The notes under the pieces are model-generated. The model had not been told where the DNA came from, did no database searches, and saw nothing but the letters and a program-made list of their open reading frames with translations. Positions 3,520 to 16,315 of a stretch of 16,315 bases of DNA are shown here, one piece after another. Where the stretch lies: positions 1 to 16,315 of the IMG/VR virus record IMGVR_UViG_3300024265_000603. One strand, written 5' to 3'. Numbering within the stretch: the stretch's first letter is position 1; each line of letters opens with the position of its first letter. The translations under genes were made by a program, and so were the position numbers.

Positions 3520-3677
3520 TAATTTACCTCTGATTCTAATTTAAAGATTTTTACTATATAATTTCCTTTCGGTAAATTAAGTTCTTTTATATGGTTTGGA
3601 ATTCTAATTGTTAAATTTACCGGTGTATTATCTTTATATTTTTTCCAAATCCATTCAAATTTAAAGATTTCTTTCAT
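3519..3677 (-). CDS. 52-aa putative AbrB/SpoVT-like DNA-binding protein
   Basis: Hand-translated; LTIRIPNHIKELNLPKGNYIVKI resembles the AbrB swapped-hairpin pattern; junction motif upstream. Confidence 0.5.
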   Translation of the reverse strand: MKEIFKFEWIWKKYKDNTPVNLTIRIPNHIKELNLPKGNYIVKIFKLESEVN

Positions 3678-3686
3678 ATTATTCAC

Positions 3687-3728: not shown

Positions 3729-4160
3729 TTATTTAATTAATGAAACTATGTATACTTCAGCTTTACCTTTAAAGTTTGGTGTATCAATTTTAGCCATTGT
3801 TTTAGAAATTTGAATAATATGACCAATTAATTTTTCAAGTATTCCTTTAAAATGTTTTTGAATTAATACAGCCAATTGAAATTGAAAGCTTCTACCATTG
3901 GCATTAAATTGGTAAATGACATCATTCATTTCTAATAACATAGTATCATAAGTGTTTCCATCAGCAAATAAAGTCGGTGTAGGTAAAGAATGAACTTTTA
4001 CATTAAAAACATCAGAGACATTATCCCTTTCATTATAACTAACTTTTAATGTTGGTAATATATTAAGTTTTGAGACTTTATCCACTTTTTCCATTTCTAA
4101 ATTATCCATGAAGTTATAAACTTCTTTTTCTGTATCTTTTTCCTTTACCAAATTTTTCAC
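3729..4160 (-). CDS. Hypothetical protein, possible OB-fold ssDNA-binding protein
   Basis: 143-aa track ORF; beta-rich core ending in Y-x-V; lies near the replication genes; start uncertain (GTG 4160 or TTG 4151). Confidence 0.6.
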   Translation of the reverse strand: MKNLVKEKDTEKEVYNFMDNLEMEKVDKVSKLNILPTLKVSYNERDNVSDVFNVKVHSLPTPTLFADGNTYDTMLLEMNDVIYQFNANGRSFQFQLAVLIQKHFKGILEKLIGHIIQISKTMAKIDTPNFKGKAEVYIVSLIK

Positions 4161-4705: not shown

Positions 4706-5188
4706 ATGAAAAATATGGTTTCTAAAGAGCAAAAAATAAAGGAAATTAAAGTAATCATAGGTAATAATCCTTCTCTTAATTCAAGTGAAACACTCAGGTT
4801 AATACAATCAGAAGGTTTAGGAATCCGTAAACAAGAATTTCAAACTTTATTTAGAGAACAGAGACAATTACCAGAACCTACAAAAGAGAAAAAAGAAAAA
4901 TCTGTACCTATAAAGTTTAGAAAGGGAATAGGAATAACCCCTATTGATAAACCAGATAAACCAAAAAAGGAGGGTCAATATGGAGTTATTGAAGTAATTG
5001 ATAATAAAGGAAATAGTTTTTGGATAAAGTATCAGAATAAAAAAGATTTTAATAGGCAATTAGAAAAAATTAAATCAAAATATTCTGTTAAAAAATTAAA
5101 ACTTGTTTCTCATGGCTTTAGAAATTATGTAGATTTCATTGATAAAGAGTTTAGGGAAATCTTAGAAACCGAGGGTATTATTTCATAA
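4706..5188 (+). CDS. Basic protein upstream of pPolB; candidate terminal protein or DNA-binding protein
   Basis: Track ORF 4607..5188, but its first 33 codons cover the regulatory repeats, so ATG 4706 or 4715 is preferred; S-x-x-x-L-R...GLGIRKQ helical motif. Confidence 0.7.
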   Translation: MKNMVSKEQKIKEIKVIIGNNPSLNSSETLRLIQSEGLGIRKQEFQTLFREQRQLPEPTKEKKEKSVPIKFRKGIGITPIDKPDKPKKEGQYGVIEVIDNKGNSFWIKYQNKKDFNRQLEKIKSKYSVKKLKLVSHGFRNYVDFIDKEFREILETEGIIS

Positions 5189-7125
5189 AAAATAATTTTC
5201 ATGAATTTAGAAAGAATAAGAAGTTAAAGATTCAATCTAATTTCATTTTTGTTGATACTGAAAGTTTCTCTAATAAGAATATTCCTAATAAAGAAATCTT
5301 AACCTTTAAAGTAGGTTGCTTAATTACATGGAATAAAGAAAGTAATGAAATAAATAAAAATACTTTTTATGATGTAAAAGATTATTGGAAAACTGTAGAA
5401 AAGTGTTTTTCTAAGGATAAAAGAAATCTTATTATGTTTGCTCACAATACTCAATTTGATTTTCTTATGTTAGATGGCTTTAACCAATTATTACATAATG
5501 GATGGCAATTAAAAAGCCATTATGTAAAAAGCAAAACTTTTATTCTTGTATTTAAAAAATTATGTATAGATAATAAATATTATACCTTACATATTTGGGA
5601 TACTATGAATTATGTACCGGAATCATTAGATAAAATTGGCATATCTGTTGGTTATCCTAAATTATCTATAGATTTTGATAAAGTTTCAGATAAAGAACTT
5701 GAAATATATTGTATGAGAGATACAGAAATTATATATGAATTTATTAAAAAATTAATTAATTTCTTAGAAGTTAATGATTTAAGTAGACTAAAAGCTACTT
5801 CTGGAAGTTTATCTTTTAATACTTTTAGACATAAATTCTATAAACCAGAAACACATAAGATTTATATTCATGATTGGAAAAGAGCAATAAAGTTAGAACG
5901 TGAAAGTTATAAAGGTGGAATTACTGATTGTTTTAAAATAGGTACTCATAAAGATTTGTATAAACTTGATATTAATTCTATGTATCCATCAATAATGAGA
6001 AAATCTTTATTACCTATAAAATTATTATTTAGTTCGCATGAATCTAATTATTCTCAAAAAGATTTATTCAAAATATATAAATTAAGTGTGAAAAAAGGTT
6101 ATGGCTGTATAATAAAAGCAACAATTAATCTTAATTATAACAATCCTTATATTCTACATAATTTTGGTACTGGTAAAGCTTTATTTAGTTATGGTACATT
6201 TAAAGTAAGTATTTGTCAACCAGAAATAGATTTTATTATGAAATATGGAAAAATATTAACTATTCATGAGATTAATGTGTATAAAATGAAAGTTATTTTT
6301 AAGGATTTTGTTGATTTCTTTTATAAAATAAAAACTGATTCTCAAAAAAATAATGATAAAATTACCACCAGATTTGCTAAACTTATGCTTAATACTCAAT
6401 ATGGTAAATGGGGTCAAAGACAACTTGACTACATGAGTTTAGATATTACACATAAATTTATGATTGAATTTCAAGAAGTAATTAAACTTATGATAATTAA
6501 AATGAAAGAAAAATTACCTAATTTCAATTTAAGTAAAGATATAGTTTATTTAGGGTCAATTATTAATGAGGGTGAACTTTATATAGTAAATGGTAAATTA
6601 TATTTACTGAAACAAACAAACAGTAATGCTAAAGATTCTTTTGTTGCCATAGCTTCTTTTATTACATCATATTCAAGAATGTTATTAATAGACTATTTAA
6701 AAATAGCTAAAAGAAAAAATGTCTTTTATGTTGATACTGATTCTTTATTTGTAAATCAATCTGGATATAATAATCTTGAAAAAGATGATTGTATTAATGA
6801 ATTTGGATTAGGAAAGTTAAAACTTGAAGAAACTGGTGTAGGAAGCTTCTACGCACCTAAATTCTATGATTTTAATGATAATCGTAAAATTAAAGGTATT
6901 AATCAAAAATCATCTATTATTCTACTTGAAAATAATAAGAAAGTAGTTTATCAAGTTCATTTATGGAAAAAATTTAAATCAAACCTTAAAGATGGATATA
7001 AACCAGAACAAGAAATCCAAACAACAACAAAAGAAAGTAAAAAATATTATGATAAGGGTAAAATAGATGATTTTAATAATGTAATACCTTTCTCTGTTAG
7101 AGAAATTGAACTTATGATTAAATAA
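5185..7125 (+). CDS. polB: Protein-primed family B DNA polymerase (~646 aa if initiated at ATA 5185)
   Basis: ExoI FVDTE (5248-5262), ExoII AHNTQFD, ExoIII YCMRD, SYKGG, PolA LDINSMYP, PolB KLMLNTQYGKWG, PolC YVDTDS, KGI; frame open from 5155; the first ATG (5434) would delete ExoI; start position is inferred. Confidence 0.95.
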   Translation: MKNNFHEFRKNKKLKIQSNFIFVDTESFSNKNIPNKEILTFKVGCLITWNKESNEINKNTFYDVKDYWKTVEKCFSKDKRNLIMFAHNTQFDFLMLDGFNQLLHNGWQLKSHYVKSKTFILVFKKLCIDNKYYTLHIWDTMNYVPESLDKIGISVGYPKLSIDFDKVSDKELEIYCMRDTEIIYEFIKKLINFLEVNDLSRLKATSGSLSFNTFRHKFYKPETHKIYIHDWKRAIKLERESYKGGITDCFKIGTHKDLYKLDINSMYPSIMRKSLLPIKLLFSSHESNYSQKDLFKIYKLSVKKGYGCIIKATINLNYNNPYILHNFGTGKALFSYGTFKVSICQPEIDFIMKYGKILTIHEINVYKMKVIFKDFVDFFYKIKTDSQKNNDKITTRFAKLMLNTQYGKWGQRQLDYMSLDITHKFMIEFQEVIKLMIIKMKEKLPNFNLSKDIVYLGSIINEGELYIVNGKLYLLKQTNSNAKDSFVAIASFITSYSRMLLIDYLKIAKRKNVFYVDTDSLFVNQSGYNNLEKDDCINEFGLGKLKLEETGVGSFYAPKFYDFNDNRKIKGINQKSSIILLENNKKVVYQVHLWKKFKSNLKDGYKPEQEIQTTTKESKKYYDKGKIDDFNNVIPFSVREIELMIK

Positions 7126-7229: not shown

Positions 7230-7472
7230 ATGGCAAATGACATAAAAAGGGTAATTTTAATTGCTGTTGCTTTAATGGTAATTGGTGTTATTATCCCTAT
7301 TGCTGTTGGTTTAGTTGCGAATGCGGGAAATGTAGTGGTTAATTCTACGAGTGGTGAGAGATTGTCTGCTATAGCAGACCCTTCTGTTGTACTAATGATT
7401 GAAGTCTTGATTCCTATAATTGCTGTAATTGCTATTGTTTTAATGTTTTTACCAAGTAAAACTGGTACTTAA
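7230..7472 (+). CDS. Major capsid protein, spindle-shaped virus type (His1 major capsid protein/SSV1 VP1-like helical hairpin)
   Basis: 80 aa; two long hydrophobic helices (...VIGVIIPIA... and ...VLIPIIAVIAIVL) joined by a loop with an N-S-T sequon; own promoter and terminator; first gene of the structural block. Confidence 0.8.
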   Translation: MANDIKRVILIAVALMVIGVIIPIAVGLVANAGNVVVNSTSGERLSAIADPSVVLMIEVLIPIIAVIAIVLMFLPSKTGT

Positions 7473-7504
7473 TAAACCAGTATTTACTATTTTTTTATTT
7501 TTTT
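7461..7504 (+). terminator. Putative terminator after the capsid gene
   Basis: ACTGGT/ACCAGT inverted repeat followed by oligo-T tracts at about 7490-7504. Confidence 0.55.
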
Positions 7505-7510
7505 ATTAAG

Positions 7511-7681
7511 GTGGTTAAGATAACAGAAAATAAAAAACTAACACCACACCAAAAAGCTATTAAAGTAAATTCTGAAAAAGAAGCTAATTTAGTTAATAAA
7601 GAATTAATCTATATTATTAAAGCCATGTTATTATCTTTTCTATTTATGACATTCATAATTATATTGATTAGAGGTTTTTAA
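7511..7681 (+). CDS. Small protein with a C-terminal TM helix (start GTG 7511 or ATA 7520)
   Basis: Hand-translated ...ITENKKLTPHQKAIKVNSEKEANLVNKELIYIIKAMLLSFLFMTFIIILIRGF; TAATG overlap with the next gene. Confidence 0.65.
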   Translation: MVKITENKKLTPHQKAIKVNSEKEANLVNKELIYIIKAMLLSFLFMTFIIILIRGF

Positions 7682-10600
7682 TGAAAAAATTTAAAAGTTC
7701 TTTAGTTCTATTATTTGTTTTAATTGTTTTTACCTTATCAAGTATTCCTTTAAATGTAAAAGGAGTTTTACCAGATTCCATAGACTATACGTTTGCTAAT
7801 AATAATTTATATGATACAACTAAACCAATTTTCAATGAATCTACTAATGTGAATGTTAGAGATGTAAGTGAATATACTCAATTTTATAATGCCACTTTTG
7901 ATTTTAATAATGAAATAGTTGGTACAAATGGAACAAACATAGACTTTATAGATTTAGCCACTATTGGTGTAGATACTACAATTCAAATAATCTCATTATT
8001 GAACGGACATAGGAAAGTCTTAGAGTTAAATGATAATGATGTAGGGGCAGAAGTTATAGGACAAAATACATTTGATTCTACTCGATTATTTGGTACTATT
8101 GAGCTTTTTATTCGAAATACGGATACATCTCTAAGAACAGATATTTTAATTAGAAGTGGTATTACTAATGCTTTACAAGTTGCGATAGCAGGAAATACAG
8201 CAAATCAACTTCAATATTTTGATGGTATTTGGAATAATATTGTTTCAATTATAGATAATATTTGGTATCATATTAGAATAGATTTTGAGTGTGGTGCTGA
8301 TGGTTATGAAAGTCTCGCACCAGATACATTTCATATTTATGTTAATGGAATAAAGTATTCTGATTTATCTTTTAGGAATACTGTATCAACTGTTAATAAT
8401 TTAAGACTTCAAACAAATGTAGGGAATAGTGGTTATTTTACCTATTTTGATGCTATTGGTTATAGTTGGTTTAAACCAAATTATAATTTTACTAATGATG
8501 TTATTGGAAGTTTTCCAGAGTTTTGGATAAATAATGATGATTTTCCAAATATGACAACTGTTATAGCTTCTTTAGATGGTAATACTAAAGTAATGGAAAT
8601 GAATGATTTTACCAGAGACGGTACAACTTCCAGTAGTCTTTCTTTTAATAGGAATCAAGATGGCTTTATTCAATTTCTTATAGCAAAAGATAATTTATCT
8701 AATGATGCCCATGGAAGGTTTAGATTTCAAGAAGGTAATAATGAAAGAATGAGATTTAGTTTTATTGGTGCTGATTTATATTACCTTCACGCAAATACAA
8801 GTACCGAATTATTTGTTAGTAATGCTTTAAGTTTAATAAATACTTTTACTGATTTTAAATTTGTTTTAGATGATACTAATAATGAAGTGGATTTATATAT
8901 TGATGATATTCTTAAACAGTCTAATGTAAATTATTTTACTAACACAGTAGATACAATTAATAAAATAACTATTCAAACCGTAGAAGCTTCAGTACCAGAT
9001 TCAATTTATAGAATGTTTTTTGATGATTTTGATTTTAATCATTTAACCATAAATACCTCAATTAATAATATTATACCTCACATTGAAACTAATCCTTTTT
9101 TAAAAGAAGTGGATACATTTACTTTCGATTTAGTTTCTGCTAACACCCTTTATGATATAGGTACTGATAATCCTTCTGGTTGGTCTGATGTAGAAAATGG
9201 TTTTGACCATACTAATATAGCGCAAGATAATACAGATATACCTTCAGGAAGTAGAACTAATAACAGAGTAGTTCAAATTGAAGGTGTTGGTTCTGATAAT
9301 GCTATTAGTGGAATAGAAAAAGATTTTAATATTTCAAGTGGAATTTTTAATATTACAATGAAATATAATTATAGTTTAAATAATAATGATTTAGGAAGTT
9401 TTATTATTTCTATTTTTACTCAAAATTTACAATTACAAGTAAAAATTAATTGTACTTTTGTAAATGCTATATTTGGTAACCAACTTGATTATAGAAATTC
9501 AAGTTTTAAAAATGTAGAATTAATTCCATTTTTAGATTCTACTATTGCTATAAACCAAGAAGTTAGTTATAATATATACATAGATTCTTTTGTTGTATTT
9601 AGAGCAACAACAGAAGGAAGTTTAGGATTCCATTCTTATAATTTTACTTTTCCTTTAATAAATCCAGATTCTTTTGGTTTAGGTAAAATAATGATTATTT
9701 CTGACCCTACAAATGTAGGTGGTACATTTCAAACAATAGAGCTTAAAGAAGTAGGTGTTTATCATAACGGAATTTCTTTATCTGATGATTTTGGTTATTT
9801 ACCTTCAGTAATTTCTGATAATGCTTCTTTCTTTTGGCAATTTTTAGCACATAATTTAATAACAATAGAAGTTTTAGGTAATATGGCAATTCATGCCACT
9901 TCTTTTAATGAGTGGATATTAGGTGGTAATATGGAAGTTATAAGTAATATGGACACTTTTAATTTAACTCAGAGAATAATTAATGTTTATTTTCAAGATT
10001 TTGTTCATTTTGGCTTTTTAGGTATCCCTACACCTATGATTGTATTTTTTATTACTTCTCAATTTAATTTAACAAGTATAAGTATTAATGGAATAAAGTT
10101 TTCTGATGATACCCCTCACGATTTTGGTTTTCTTGCTTATGAATCTGGTGGTGTAGATAATAATGTAAGTTATTTCTTTTTAGATTCAAGTAATACATTA
10201 AAATATTTTCATACTACTGATGATAATAATGTAAATGAATTTATTCAGGCTGAGTTAGTTATTGGTGGTTTAGACACTAATAATACAGCAATACAGTTTA
10301 ATTCTAATAAAGATAATAATGCCTTTGGTTTTTTCAGAGTAAGTTATGTATCAACATCAACTATATTTAAAATACAATCAATTTTTAAAACTACTATATC
10401 TATATTACCTAATTCTAAATCTATTATTTCATATATAATTTTAATAACTGATAATAATGATAATACTGTTTCTGGTTTAACAACTGGTTTTGTTTCTAAT
10501 ATTAAATTATTATTTACTGAACAACAAATAGTTTCTGTAATTACATTTTCTTTATTATCTGTTTTAATTCCTTTAATTATTATATTAATACCAAGTTTAG

Positions 10601-10764
10601 CATTAAGAATGACAATTGGTAAATTTGCTTTTATTCCATCTTTTATATTAATGACAATTATTTCCATTATAAGTGGCTTAATACCAACTTGGTTATTTTT
10701 TGTAATTATGTTATCAAGTTCGTTATTTATATTTAATGAAAAAGATAATAGAGTTGATATATAA
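7681..10764 (+). CDS. Large membrane-anchored adhesin/receptor-binding glycoprotein with tandem lectin (LamG/ConA)-like domains
   Basis: N-terminal signal peptide; beta-rich body with WYHIRIDF...FHIYVNG; ~19 N-x-S/T sequons counted by eye; three C-terminal TM segments. Confidence 0.8.
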   Translation: MKKFKSSLVLLFVLIVFTLSSIPLNVKGVLPDSIDYTFANNNLYDTTKPIFNESTNVNVRDVSEYTQFYNATFDFNNEIVGTNGTNIDFIDLATIGVDTTIQIISLLNGHRKVLELNDNDVGAEVIGQNTFDSTRLFGTIELFIRNTDTSLRTDILIRSGITNALQVAIAGNTANQLQYFDGIWNNIVSIIDNIWYHIRIDFECGADGYESLAPDTFHIYVNGIKYSDLSFRNTVSTVNNLRLQTNVGNSGYFTYFDAIGYSWFKPNYNFTNDVIGSFPEFWINNDDFPNMTTVIASLDGNTKVMEMNDFTRDGTTSSSLSFNRNQDGFIQFLIAKDNLSNDAHGRFRFQEGNNERMRFSFIGADLYYLHANTSTELFVSNALSLINTFTDFKFVLDDTNNEVDLYIDDILKQSNVNYFTNTVDTINKITIQTVEASVPDSIYRMFFDDFDFNHLTINTSINNIIPHIETNPFLKEVDTFTFDLVSANTLYDIGTDNPSGWSDVENGFDHTNIAQDNTDIPSGSRTNNRVVQIEGVGSDNAISGIEKDFNISSGIFNITMKYNYSLNNNDLGSFIISIFTQNLQLQVKINCTFVNAIFGNQLDYRNSSFKNVELIPFLDSTIAINQEVSYNIYIDSFVVFRATTEGSLGFHSYNFTFPLINPDSFGLGKIMIISDPTNVGGTFQTIELKEVGVYHNGISLSDDFGYLPSVISDNASFFWQFLAHNLITIEVLGNMAIHATSFNEWILGGNMEVISNMDTFNLTQRIINVYFQDFVHFGFLGIPTPMIVFFITSQFNLTSISINGIKFSDDTPHDFGFLAYESGGVDNNVSYFFLDSSNTLKYFHTTDDNNVNEFIQAELVIGGLDTNNTAIQFNSNKDNNAFGFFRVSYVSTSTIFKIQSIFKTTISILPNSKSIISYIILITDNNDNTVSGLTTGFVSNIKLLFTEQQIVSVITFSLLSVLIPLIIILIPSLALRMTIGKFAFIPSFILMTIISIISGLIPTWLFFVIMLSSSLFIFNEKDNRVDI

Positions 10765-12182: not shown

Positions 12183-12539
12183 ATGTCAATTGAAAATGAA
12201 CTTCCAGATTTACTTTCTAATCCTTTAAGTGAATTATCCAGAGATAAAAATATTACTTTACAACAAATATTAAATAATCTATTAGACGGAAGTAAAGACT
12301 TAGAGTTAAAGACACATATATTTAAACCTAAAGCTTTAAGTGGATTAAAGATAATTGCTGATGCTTTAATGAGTAAAGGGTATAAAACTTCCGCAAATCA
12401 TATTCTAAATTATATTGATACTTATCTTAAATACATGGTTAGTTATCAGAGAAAAAGTAGAACCGAAATAATTAAAGCTTTTACTATGTCAAGCAGAAAA
12501 GAAGTAATGGATAACGATTTTACAAAAAGTTTGGATTAA
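12183..12539 (+). CDS. Hypothetical helical protein preceding the ATPase
   Basis: Track ORF; coupled to both neighbours. Confidence 0.85.
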   Translation: MSIENELPDLLSNPLSELSRDKNITLQQILNNLLDGSKDLELKTHIFKPKALSGLKIIADALMSKGYKTSANHILNYIDTYLKYMVSYQRKSRTEIIKAFTMSSRKEVMDNDFTKSLD

Positions 12540-13231
12540 TGTTAGTAATTATACTTGGCAATTTAGGGAGCGGTAAAACTTATATTATGATGTTATTAGC
12601 TTATCAAGATAAAAGACAAATATTATCTAATTTTAATATAAAAAGAAAGAATGTAAAGGTAATTGATGTACCAGATTTACTTGATTTACCAGATGATATA
12701 GTTTTATTAATGGATGAAGCTTATAGTTGGATTGAATCCAGAAGTAGTCTTGATTCATTGAATAAATATTTATCAAGTGTTTTATTCCATATTAGAAAAA
12801 CCAATACTGATATTTATATTACTACACCAATGTATTCTACAATAGATAAAAGGTTTCGAAATCAGGCTAATTATATAATTTTTTGTAAACATAGAAATAA
12901 TTTTGAATCTGATGATTTTCATTTTTTATTCTATGATGTAAATAATAGAACTTATGGAATTAGTACACTAAAGTATTCTGAAGCTAAAAAATACTTTCAT
13001 TTATATGATACTAATGAAAAAGTAGAATCATACAAGAAAAGAGGTTTACAATTCAATATCTTAAAAAAATATCCAGAAAGAATGAAAGAATATATAAAAC
13101 AAATATCAAAATTAGCAAATAAACAATTAAATGGTAATATTACTCACGACAGAGTAAAGAAATTTCTATTTGATAATGGAATTGATTTAGGTTTTCATTC
13201 ATTTCTATATATAGATTTAAAAGGTAATTAA
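12539..13231 (+). CDS. P-loop morphogenesis/extrusion ATPase (Zot/inovirus pI-like, as in spindle-shaped viruses)
   Basis: Walker A GNLGSGKT at the N-terminus, Walker B LLMDEA, HIRK and IDKRFR motifs. Confidence 0.88.
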   Translation: MLVIILGNLGSGKTYIMMLLAYQDKRQILSNFNIKRKNVKVIDVPDLLDLPDDIVLLMDEAYSWIESRSSLDSLNKYLSSVLFHIRKTNTDIYITTPMYSTIDKRFRNQANYIIFCKHRNNFESDDFHFLFYDVNNRTYGISTLKYSEAKKYFHLYDTNEKVESYKKRGLQFNILKKYPERMKEYIKQISKLANKQLNGNITHDRVKKFLFDNGIDLGFHSFLYIDLKGN

Positions 13232-13232
13232 A

Positions 13233-13406
13233 ATGATAACAACAATAAAGATAACAAAATATATTAAATTACAACAATGTTCTAATCATGGTTTAAAGGT
13301 TTTCTTAAAATATAAGGGTAAATGGATAATGATTAAATTAACAAATTATCAAGTAGAATTATTACAATATATATTAAATATTATAAATGGTAAACATGAA
13401 AAATAA
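13233..13406 (+). CDS. 57-aa basic hypothetical protein (MITTIKITKYIKLQQCSNHG...)
   Basis: Hand-translated; SD-like AAGGT; fills the gap after the ATPase. Confidence 0.55.
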   Translation: MITTIKITKYIKLQQCSNHGLKVFLKYKGKWIMIKLTNYQVELLQYILNIINGKHEK

Positions 13407-14202
13407 ACTAAAAAGAATTTTTGCTTCGGTTAGATATTCATTAATGTTTAAAACAATGAAATATATAACACCAATAATGTATGAAAAGTTTATTATCTTA
13501 AATAATATCTGGAAAAGTAAAAATCATATTGGTGGCAAATTAGATAATGTAAATAGAATTCCAAGACCAGCAATATTATTTATAAAAAAATATTTTAAAG
13601 ATAAACTAATTACTGGATTAGAATTAGGTGTTAAATTAGGTAAAAATTCTGAAAGTATTCTAAAAGAGTTAAATATTCAAACTCTTTATCTGATTGATGC
13701 TTGGGATGATTATGTTGCGAATGAAATAACTAAAGAAGGGCAAAAAAGACATTACTTACTTACATTGAAAAAATTTAAAGATGATAATAGAGTAAAAATA
13801 ATAAAGGGTTTTTCCGAAAATATTGTTCATAGATTTGATAATGAGAGTTTGGATTTTGTATATATTGACGGAAATCATAGTTATGATTTTGTTTATCAAG
13901 ATATAACTATATGGAGTAAAAAAGTAAAACAAAATGGAATTATATCTGGTCACGATATTTTTAATTTTAATGATGTATTATCAGCTGTTAAGAAGTGGAG
14001 TATAAAAAATCAATATAATTTCTTTATAAAACCACCAGATTGGTATATTATAAAGAAAGATATTATTACTTGTAAAGAATGTAGTTATTGTAATAAAGAA
14101 TTAGATATATGTACTTATGAAAGTATTGAGAAATTATCAAATAAAAATCTTGAAATTTGTATTTGTTTTATGCCAATAATGAATTATAATATAAGAAAAT
14201 GA
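13387..14202 (+). CDS. Class I SAM-dependent methyltransferase (Methyltransf_24-like) with a Cys-rich C-terminal tail
   Basis: GLELGVKLG, LYLIDAW, LDFVYIDGNHSY and GIISGHD motifs; CKECSYC...C...CIC tail; start 13387 or 13396. Confidence 0.88.
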   Translation: MVNMKNKLKRIFASVRYSLMFKTMKYITPIMYEKFIILNNIWKSKNHIGGKLDNVNRIPRPAILFIKKYFKDKLITGLELGVKLGKNSESILKELNIQTLYLIDAWDDYVANEITKEGQKRHYLLTLKKFKDDNRVKIIKGFSENIVHRFDNESLDFVYIDGNHSYDFVYQDITIWSKKVKQNGIISGHDIFNFNDVLSAVKKWSIKNQYNFFIKPPDWYIIKKDIITCKECSYCNKELDICTYESIEKLSNKNLEICICFMPIMNYNIRK

Positions 14203-14931: not shown

Positions 14932-15111
14932 TTAATAGTATTTAAAAGAATTAATCAAACAAATGTTCATTCTTGAAAAATCAAATTTATCTATTAATCT
15001 TTTTGAAGGTTCTTTACCTACATTACCTTTTACAACATATTGATAATTTATTAATTCATTACCTAAATAATCTTTCATGTATAAAGTTATTAATTTTATT
15101 TTATCAAACAT
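14932..15111 (-). CDS. Hypothetical protein
   Basis: Track ORF 14932..15120; ATG after AAAAGTGAAAACT; followed by a T-rich tract. Confidence 0.6.
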   Translation of the reverse strand: MFDKIKLITLYMKDYLGNELINYQYVVKGNVGKEPSKRLIDKFDFSRMNICLINSFKYY

Positions 15112-15116
15112 AGTTT

Positions 15117-15317
15117 TCACTTTTGGTTTATTTTTATTATTATAGATTTAGGAATCCAAATATTTTGTTTAACAGAATGGTGTACAGCTATTACAGGGTG
15201 TAGTTTAAAATGAATAGCTTTATTAGTTTCTTTTATAATATTTCCATCTAAACAATTAGGATTTCTCATAAGATTATTCTTTTTTAGAAACCATTCTGGT
15301 AAATAAATACTTATCAT
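15117..15317 (-). CDS. Small beta-rich viral protein (IIKETxKA...WIPKS family)
   Basis: Motif recalled from small phage and archaeal-virus hypothetical proteins; SD-like GAGTTGA. Confidence 0.75.
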   Translation of the reverse strand: MISIYLPEWFLKKNNLMRNPNCLDGNIIKETNKAIHFKLHPVIAVHHSVKQNIWIPKSIIIKINQK

Positions 15318-15375: not shown

Positions 15376-15645
15376 TTAAAATATGTAATAACCTTCTTTA
15401 AATGCTTTATCAATAGATTCTTTATTATCTTTATACACATTTTCACATTCTAAAGAACAAAAATCAGATTTAGGTAATATTTTAAAAGTACTTCCACAGG
15501 CTTTACATTCTCTATGTTCTTTACACAGTCTAATAGAAATAATACCTCTACTCTCAAGATAATTAGTAAGATTATTACATCCATAAACAGAACATAAATC
15601 ATTTTTTAGAACTTTTTTAGGTGGTATAATATTATTATATGTCAT
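15376..15645 (-). CDS. Double zinc-finger protein
   Basis: CSVYGC...CKEH followed by CKAC...FCSLEC; track ORF 15376..15654. Confidence 0.75.
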   Translation of the reverse strand: MTYNNIIPPKKVLKNDLCSVYGCNNLTNYLESRGIISIRLCKEHRECKACGSTFKILPKSDFCSLECENVYKDNKESIDKAFKEGYYIF

Positions 15646-15654
15646 AGTTTTCAC

Positions 15655-15896: not shown

Positions 15897-16000
15897 TTAC
15901 ACCACATTTTCCCTAAAAATTATACCCTCCTTCTATTTAACTCTCATTCTATTAACCCCTCTTAAAACCAACCCTCATTTTACTCATATACTAAAAAATC

Positions 16001-16315
16001 GTCTACTCTTAAAACCCTTTCTCTACTTTCTACCTCTCATTCTAAGAACACCTCTTTAAATCAATCTCTCTACACCTCTTTAACAACCACCTCACTCAAC
16101 CAACCCTTAACCAAACAACCTCTCTCAAACTATTCTCTCTCACTCCCTACTCTTAACTCAACCTACTCTCTGTATAATCGTACCTCTTTGCTCATACCCT
16201 CTTACAACCCTCCATCTCTTACTTAGTAAGTATTCTGCCTATACTACGATACATAGAGTATCTCAGGATTGGTCTTGTTAGGGTATGAGTAGGGGCTCGG
16301 AAGTGCAGTTTTAAG
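16001..16315 (-). repeat. Right terminal inverted repeat
   Basis: Reverse complement of 1-315, compared base by base. Confidence 0.98.

Follow-up and report, generated by a model that had tools for sequence, protein, structure and literature searches.

AUA as the probable start codon of the protein-primed DNA polymerase of the wyrdvirus WyrdV3, within a four-nucleotide stop/start overlap

Our analysis concerns the gene for a family B DNA polymerase of the protein-primed type (pPolB; 5185-7125, plus strand) of the wyrdvirus WyrdV3, whose linear genome makes up the whole 16,315-bp stretch of DNA examined here, referred to as the window. The reading frame of this gene offers no canonical start codon ahead of its ExoI motif, and comparison with related viruses suggests, with a probability of roughly 0.7, that the polymerase is translated from an AUA codon at position 5185, that this start is coupled to termination of the upstream gene, and that polymerase output is low relative to the upstream protein. 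From the sequences of this junction and its relatives we infer termination-reinitiation, a Met at residue 1 and reduced polymerase output.

The polymerase frame is closed upstream by an in-frame TAG (5152-5154), is open from 5155 and has its first ATG, GTG or TTG at codon 94, an ATG at 5434-5436. The original prediction had described this frame, without a canonical start before 5434 and with an ExoI motif (FVDTE) at 5248-5262, and all of this was confirmed in the sequence. The same applies to its observation that an ATA at 5185-5187 overlaps the TAA stop of the upstream gene (5186-5188), with which it shares TA, 8 nt after a Shine-Dalgarno (SD)-like GAGGGT (5171-5176). The two genes are co-directional and their 4-nt overlap reads ATAA (5185-5188); its restart codon is thus ATA, in contrast to the canonical NTG of 4-nt overlap pairs. 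The codons from ATA to the first ATG form an extension of 83 codons (5185-5433), to which ExoI is confined. Among stop-to-stop frames of at least 70 codons, the polymerase is the sole credible gene of the window whose long leader offers no canonical start, and it is likewise the only such gene across all wyrdvirus loci that were fetched.

For the comparison, DNA was fetched for the loci behind protein clusters truncated like that of the window and for the best 80 JGI loci. An ATA overlapping the stop codon at the homologous position was present in 18 contigs with polymerases 50-88% identical, representing 16 distinct junctions from about 15 datasets (JGI, ENA and Logan) and several assemblers. 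These contigs are the window, L003, L004/5, L007, L008, L012, L013, L015, L029, L085, L086 and L088-L094; L095 is an identical second copy from a separate dataset. The 4-nt overlap was kept in all 16 distinct junctions, and in L091 it reads ATAG, i.e., the upstream stop is TAG and ATA is retained. In WyrdV2 (L002/L014), whose polymerase is 58% identical to that of WyrdV3, an ATGA stands exactly opposite the ATAA, so that a single G-to-A change converts ATG/TGA to ATA/TAA. ATGA also occupies the aligned position in L009, L021 has TTGA, and in WyrdV6 (L010) a TAA is directly followed by TTG. The alignment of homologous loci called for by the original prediction thus showed ATG at the 5185 position in relatives (WyrdV2 and L009) and no fused open reading frames (ORFs), in agreement with the proposal of AUA initiation in an ATAA derived from ATGA coupling. 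Across the junctions, this near-cognate codon is conserved opposite the AUG of orthologs and directly precedes translated sequence under selection, as described below.

Because the ATA is one base away from ATGA and the genome is a metagenome assembly, we considered a sequencing or assembly error masking a true ATGA, or a defective genome carrying a decaying pseudogene. Such an explanation is highly improbable, as the same ATA is shared by 18 contigs that stem from about 15 datasets and were built by different assemblers, L093 with its 44× coverage being one of them, and purifying selection acts on the extension as well as on the rest of the gene. An assembly indel, which had been raised as an alternative at the outset, would have to arise again and again, in about 15 datasets and with several assemblers. 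Moreover, A-T-A is invariant in the 16 distinct junctions, whereas adjacent wobble positions are variable. The first A of ATA is the wobble base of the last sense codon of the upstream gene, which by lineage is TCA, TTA, CTA, ACA, GTA or ATA, with A in 16/16. An invariant A at the wobble site of a variable codon is the pattern expected from selection on the AUA codon.

The pattern of substitutions indicates that the codons following ATA are translated and under purifying selection. The window and its closest relatives differ at 42% of synonymous sites, and the ratio of nonsynonymous to synonymous differences per site (pN/pS) in the 83-codon extension is 0.25. Over all computable pairs, pN/pS of the extension was 0.19-0.62, which is the range of the rest of the gene, at a synonymous divergence of 0.23-0.75 (one pair excepted). 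The 22 codons between ATA and the ExoI Asp, compared in eight disjoint pairs, yielded a pS of 0.37, a pN of 0.08 and a pN/pS of 0.23. In L013, L015 and L094, an ATG lies 16-19 codons downstream of ATA; between ATA and ExoI, L013 and L015 differ by about five synonymous changes and one replacement, which places initiation upstream of that ATG. In the other direction, the polymerase frame extends no further than a stop located 1-10 codons before ATA, with a single open codon in L003/L005, L007 and L015, and ATA is the sole near-cognate codon common to the open stretches of all ATA junctions. No other near-cognate codon was found between the closing stop and ATA in the window, L086 and L007. The expectation that homologs would be similar across the 83 residues also held, as the pPolB N terminus is conserved and most of 120 homologs share an M-K-x-N-F-H-x-F-R-K N terminus that begins exactly at the ATA-aligned codon.

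Two further observations were made in this region. L003 and L004/L005 are identical at synonymous sites over polymerase codons 1-83 but reach a pS of 0.43 over the remaining codons, which indicates that recombination has recently left a break within this gene. An out-of-frame ATG at 5201, combined with an indel, was considered as a start and rejected: this ATG arises from conserved His-Glu codons (CAT GAA), reads CAC GAA in L003/L004 and is out of frame also in WyrdV2 despite the in-frame ATGA of that virus.

The product was identified as pPolB by matches to PF03175 (Pfam; E value of 1.2e-30, 107 bits against a cut-off of 25.8) and PHROG 1907 (E value of 7.5e-51, covering residues 21-634 of the translation from 5155 and starting at profile position 9) and by its invariant exonuclease (Exo) and polymerase (Pol) motifs. 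The motif patterns used were DxE for ExoI, Nx2-3F/YD for ExoII, Yx3D for ExoIII, Dx2SxYP for motif A, Kx3NSxYG for motif B and YxDTDS for motif C. In a 15-sequence alignment (A1), the invariant residues comprised D24/E26 of ExoI, N88/F91/D92 of ExoII and Y175/D179 of ExoIII, as well as D262/N264/S265/Y267 of motif A, K399/N403/Y406/G407 of motif B and Y515/D517/T518/D519/S520 of motif C. The public gene call for this polymerase (P0001) begins with MFAHNTQFDF, i.e., at the ATG at 5434, which is the first canonical start and the choice of gene callers, and would give a 563-aa polymerase without ExoI. We consider it very unlikely that this database version is the true product, since the 83 upstream codons are conserved as protein despite many synonymous changes, they hold the invariant D and E of ExoI, and no SD-like motif precedes 5434. 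In the searched collection, 11 clusters at 90% identity (P0001-3, P0007-8, P0022, P0027, P0037, P0040, P0059 and P0077) start at the first Met of the window (5434) or 11 codons later and therefore lack ExoI. An internal TTG or ATG just before ExoI is used as the start in P0004, P0006 and P0019, as read from DNA, and in P0009, as judged from its near-identity to L007. Public gene calls for the WyrdV3-type polymerase are wrong and cut short, and wyrdvirus polymerases modeled or expressed from the affected entries would represent an incomplete enzyme.

Relative to the frame of the upstream gene, that of the polymerase is shifted by −1, and linear plasmids provide natural examples of terminal protein fused to pPolB. 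A −1 frameshift or a hop at the end of the upstream gene, yielding a fusion of the upstream protein to the polymerase, had been named as an alternative in the original prediction. We judge such recoding improbable. The junction has neither a slippery X XXY YYZ heptamer nor a stimulatory structure of the kind that marks programmed −1 frameshifting: the predicted fold of 5120-5260 is no better than that of shuffled sequences (z = 0.13), and a search of Rfam gave no match for a known RNA element. The variable last codons of the upstream gene mean that P-site re-pairing is not conserved, and the single open codon before ATA in L003/L005, L007 and L015 leaves the polymerase frame closed almost up to the overlap. 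N-terminal fusion ORFs were rejected as well, as the long homologs P0006 (836 aa) and P0087 (865 aa) are extended at the C terminus instead. The polymerase ORF of L085 (L085:6540-9050, on an 18,956-bp contig) is about 200 aa longer at the C terminus, with 836 aa as called versus a norm of 646 aa, and P0087 is a similarly long polymerase.

In several mitochondrial codes, AUA stands for Met and serves as a start codon. By this precedent, the host might read AUA as Met, which would make ATA an ordinary start. The probability of such a code change appears negligible. In 72 homologs, the residue opposite the polymerase's 25 internal ATA codons is I in 43%, L in 14% and V in 13%, and Met is outside the seven commonest; ATT codons behave similarly, whereas ATG aligns with M in 36%. 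Neither did a search for virus-encoded tRNA genes find any in the genome.

The history of the start codon was followed on a maximum-likelihood tree built without the N-terminal columns, with the start states of re-fetched gene-caller products read from DNA. The window belongs to a clade of 13 members (support 99/98), of which 11 carry ATA, one CTG (L011), one GTA (L087) and none a canonical start. Outside this clade, L007 has ATA, and so do L090 and L091, whose sister L019 has ATG; the group L013/L015/L094, also with ATA, is sister to WyrdV2's ATGA clade. The start-codon trait needs at least four changes on the tree, and a single noncanonical clade was rejected (approximately unbiased test, P = 9e-5). 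The tree thus indicates that the AUA state arose or reverted several times and that it persists through long divergence. ATA and canonical forms were also found in the same samples: WyrdV3 and WyrdV6 both come from Ga0209976, and Ga0114925 holds both types. Inability of the host to use ATG is therefore not the reason for ATA.

Upstream of ATA, GG was found at −11/−10 in 16/16 distinct junctions and T at −9 in 15/16, always at the same spacing. Pairing predicted with a generic anti-SD sequence ranged from −3.9 to −8.5 kcal/mol before ATA against a background of −2.1 ± 1.9 kcal/mol. The ATGA relatives carry GGA where the ATA junctions have GGT. Elsewhere in the genome, genes have GAGGT, GGTG or GTGA motifs ahead of their ATG; GAGGT or GGTGG precedes plus-strand genes, and GTGAAWAMTWTG precedes 11 small minus-strand genes, with 0.03 occurrences expected by chance; as the motifs of both strands are parts of the usual AGGAGGUGAUC SD complement, the host evidently uses SD pairing. 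An SD-like GGT at fixed spacing would also suit independent, SD-directed initiation at AUA or a neighboring near-cognate codon, with the stop overlap being a leftover of the ancestral ATGA, and in Haloferax volcanii the SD contributes to reinitiation to widely differing degrees (PMC6728339). We consider this explanation rather unlikely, because the 4-nt overlap has been retained in every distinct junction, even in the one with TAG, and because ribosomes brought in by termination would be of greatest benefit to a poor codon.

Several points weigh against a selected, SD-assisted start at AUA. The GGT at 5174-5176 doubles as a conserved Gly codon of the upstream protein, and GGT is the commonest Gly codon in the genome (88/157); the motif fits an SD and is suggestive of that role, which is confounded by both of these properties. 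Two members of the window's own clade lack ATA. In L011 (L011:311-330), a short contig, the aligned codon is CTG and the upstream ORF terminates 8 nt further on; in L087 (L087:1480-1510), likewise a short contig, with 3× coverage, GTA stands within GTAA and the reading frame of the upstream gene seems to be broken close to its end. GUA would be a very poor start, and these contigs may hold errors. Finally, the genome has 23% GC, and its strong mutation pressure towards AT could preserve A rather than G with no positive selection acting in favor of a weak start.

We propose that AUA replaced the AUG of an ancestral AUGA overlap by one G-to-A change, by which the upstream stop would have turned from TGA into TAA. 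Ribosomes ending the upstream gene would stop at UAA, step one nucleotide back and restart on AUA, possibly aided by the SD-like GGU 9-11 nt upstream, and the initiator Met-tRNA would be expected to place Met at position 1 of the polymerase. Termination-reinitiation is the demonstrated mode of coupling at 4-nt overlaps in H. volcanii and Escherichia coli (PMC6728339, PMC10666635), and in E. coli AUA, AUC, AUU and CUG initiate at about 1-2% of the level of AUG (bioRxiv 10.1101/063800). A start as poor as AUA would set polymerase at a small, fixed fraction of the upstream protein. Such a low ratio is plausible; the upstream protein may be the terminal protein, which is spent once per DNA end, while the polymerase is recycled. 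It is possible, though we offer it only tentatively, that AUAA represents a selected and recurrent wyrdvirus device for a low ratio of polymerase to upstream protein, and that it works because the ribosomes of the Asgard hosts tolerate near-cognate restarts, after termination or generally, more than those of model prokaryotes.

The upstream gene (4715-5188, plus strand) encodes 157 aa, is conserved in wyrdviruses and ends with the TAA at 5186-5188; its start, the ATG at 4715, was set by alignment with relatives and by the ATGAAAAAT motif before the ATG. The protein had no Pfam or PHROG match, and its AlphaFold2 model (mean predicted local distance difference test score, 83) gave no significant fold match in the PDB (best E value of 0.17). 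According to the model and the alignment, it consists of a helical N-terminal domain, a linker with LPEP(S/T)xEK and an alpha/beta C-terminal domain. Tyr89, within a KKEGQYG motif, and Lys105 are invariant in 18 homologs. Judging from the location of its gene immediately ahead of pPolB, and from the inverted terminal repeats of the genome, the upstream protein is a candidate for the terminal protein or for a polymerase partner that binds DNA; as terminal protein, it could prime through Tyr89. Inside the gene, in another frame, an SD-like AAGGAGGGT is followed by an ATG at 4981 (region 4966-4998), which opens an ORF of five codons only. This combination is probably a by-product of the conserved KKEGQYG codons.

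The window is identical to the IMG/VR record UViG_3300024265_000603 and to the JGI contig Ga0209976_10001089 (L006; 100% over 16,315 bp), which was named WyrdV3 by Medvedeva et al. (bioRxiv 10.1101/2021.07.29.453957). Wyrdviruses are viruses of Asgard archaea and kin of spindle-shaped viruses (bioRxiv 10.1101/2021.07.29.453957). The metagenome-assembled genomes that hold binned relatives of the polymerase belong to Promethearchaeota (Loki) and Hermodarchaeota. A search of the GenBank phage collection returned no record matching the window at the DNA level. The left inverted terminal repeat (1-324) is 324 nt long and 98% complementary to the right copy (15992-16315), and the presence of these repeats identifies the linear genome as complete. 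Their complementarity is 98% and not 100%, and weaker inverted similarity runs inward (252-290 versus 15933-15971). The plus strand carries the upstream gene, pPolB, genes for small hydrophobic proteins and genes for a 1,027-aa protein (7681-10764), a pI/Zot-like ATPase (12539-13231) and a methyltransferase (13387-14202), the latter two recognized by profile searches (Pfam and PHROG). Together with the identity to the named WyrdV3, the ATPase and methyltransferase genes place the window among the wyrdviruses; the genome plan reported for WyrdV2, WyrdV3 and WyrdV6 comprises pPolB, a His1-like capsid protein, an adhesin and a pI-like ATPase (bioRxiv 10.1101/2021.07.29.453957). A small ORF before the gene of the 1,027-aa protein (7460-7681) has its first canonical start at a GTG at 7511 and no ATG until codon 55, and its end overlaps the ATG at 7681 by one base.

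On the minus strand, each of the eleven small ORFs has its start codon at the end of a copy of the 12-nt GTGAAWAMTWTG (mostly GTGAATAATATG). The copies lie at 811-822, 1350-1361, 1748-1759, 1891-1902, 2051-2062, 2294-2305, 2668-2679, 3675-3686, 4149-4160 (which ends in TTG), 15109-15120 and 15643-15654. This sequence is probably a shared SD-plus-spacer leader of early genes, and because of it ORF lists wrongly place the start at a GTG that precedes the real ATG by 9 nt.

To our knowledge, natural AUA start codons have rarely been described outside organelles, and in the case of WyrdV3 the comparative data fix both the AUA codon and its ATGA ancestry. The junction raises a question that can be tested with reporters, concerning the stringency of start-codon selection and termination-reinitiation in Asgard archaea. 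It also suggests start-codon strength as a means of tuning how strongly the replication module is expressed, in a state that arose or reverted more than once. A word search found no mention of a start codon in the two papers covered, the wyrdvirus preprint (bioRxiv 10.1101/2021.07.29.453957) and the 2026 Asgard virome paper.

Among known systems, the junction most directly recalls the AUGA 4-nt overlaps surveyed by Huber et al. (2019, PMC6728339; 2023, PMC10666635). As in those, the genes form a co-directional pair, the upstream gene contains an SD-like motif at the usual distance, and the ATAA of WyrdV3 is positionally homologous to the ATGA of WyrdV2. The restart codon of WyrdV3, however, is AUA, which falls outside the NTG set of those surveys (PMC6728339, PMC10666635), and coupling in WyrdV3 is a proposal. 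Regarding gene order, phi29 (genes 3/2), PRD1 (genes VIII/I) and Bam35/AP50 likewise have a linear genome with inverted terminal repeats in which a small gene immediately precedes pPolB, and in AP50 the genes for the terminal protein and the polymerase are annotated together under the match. Unlike the products of those small genes, the upstream protein of WyrdV3 has no detectable sequence or fold similarity to terminal proteins. Finally, infC and pcnB of E. coli have conserved weak AUU starts that limit expression. They resemble the WyrdV3 polymerase gene in that a near-cognate codon is conserved where orthologs have AUG, with a plausible role in keeping the amount of enzyme low. They differ in that WyrdV3, an archaeal virus, uses AUA rather than AUU, has no known autoregulatory factor and carries this codon within a stop/start overlap.

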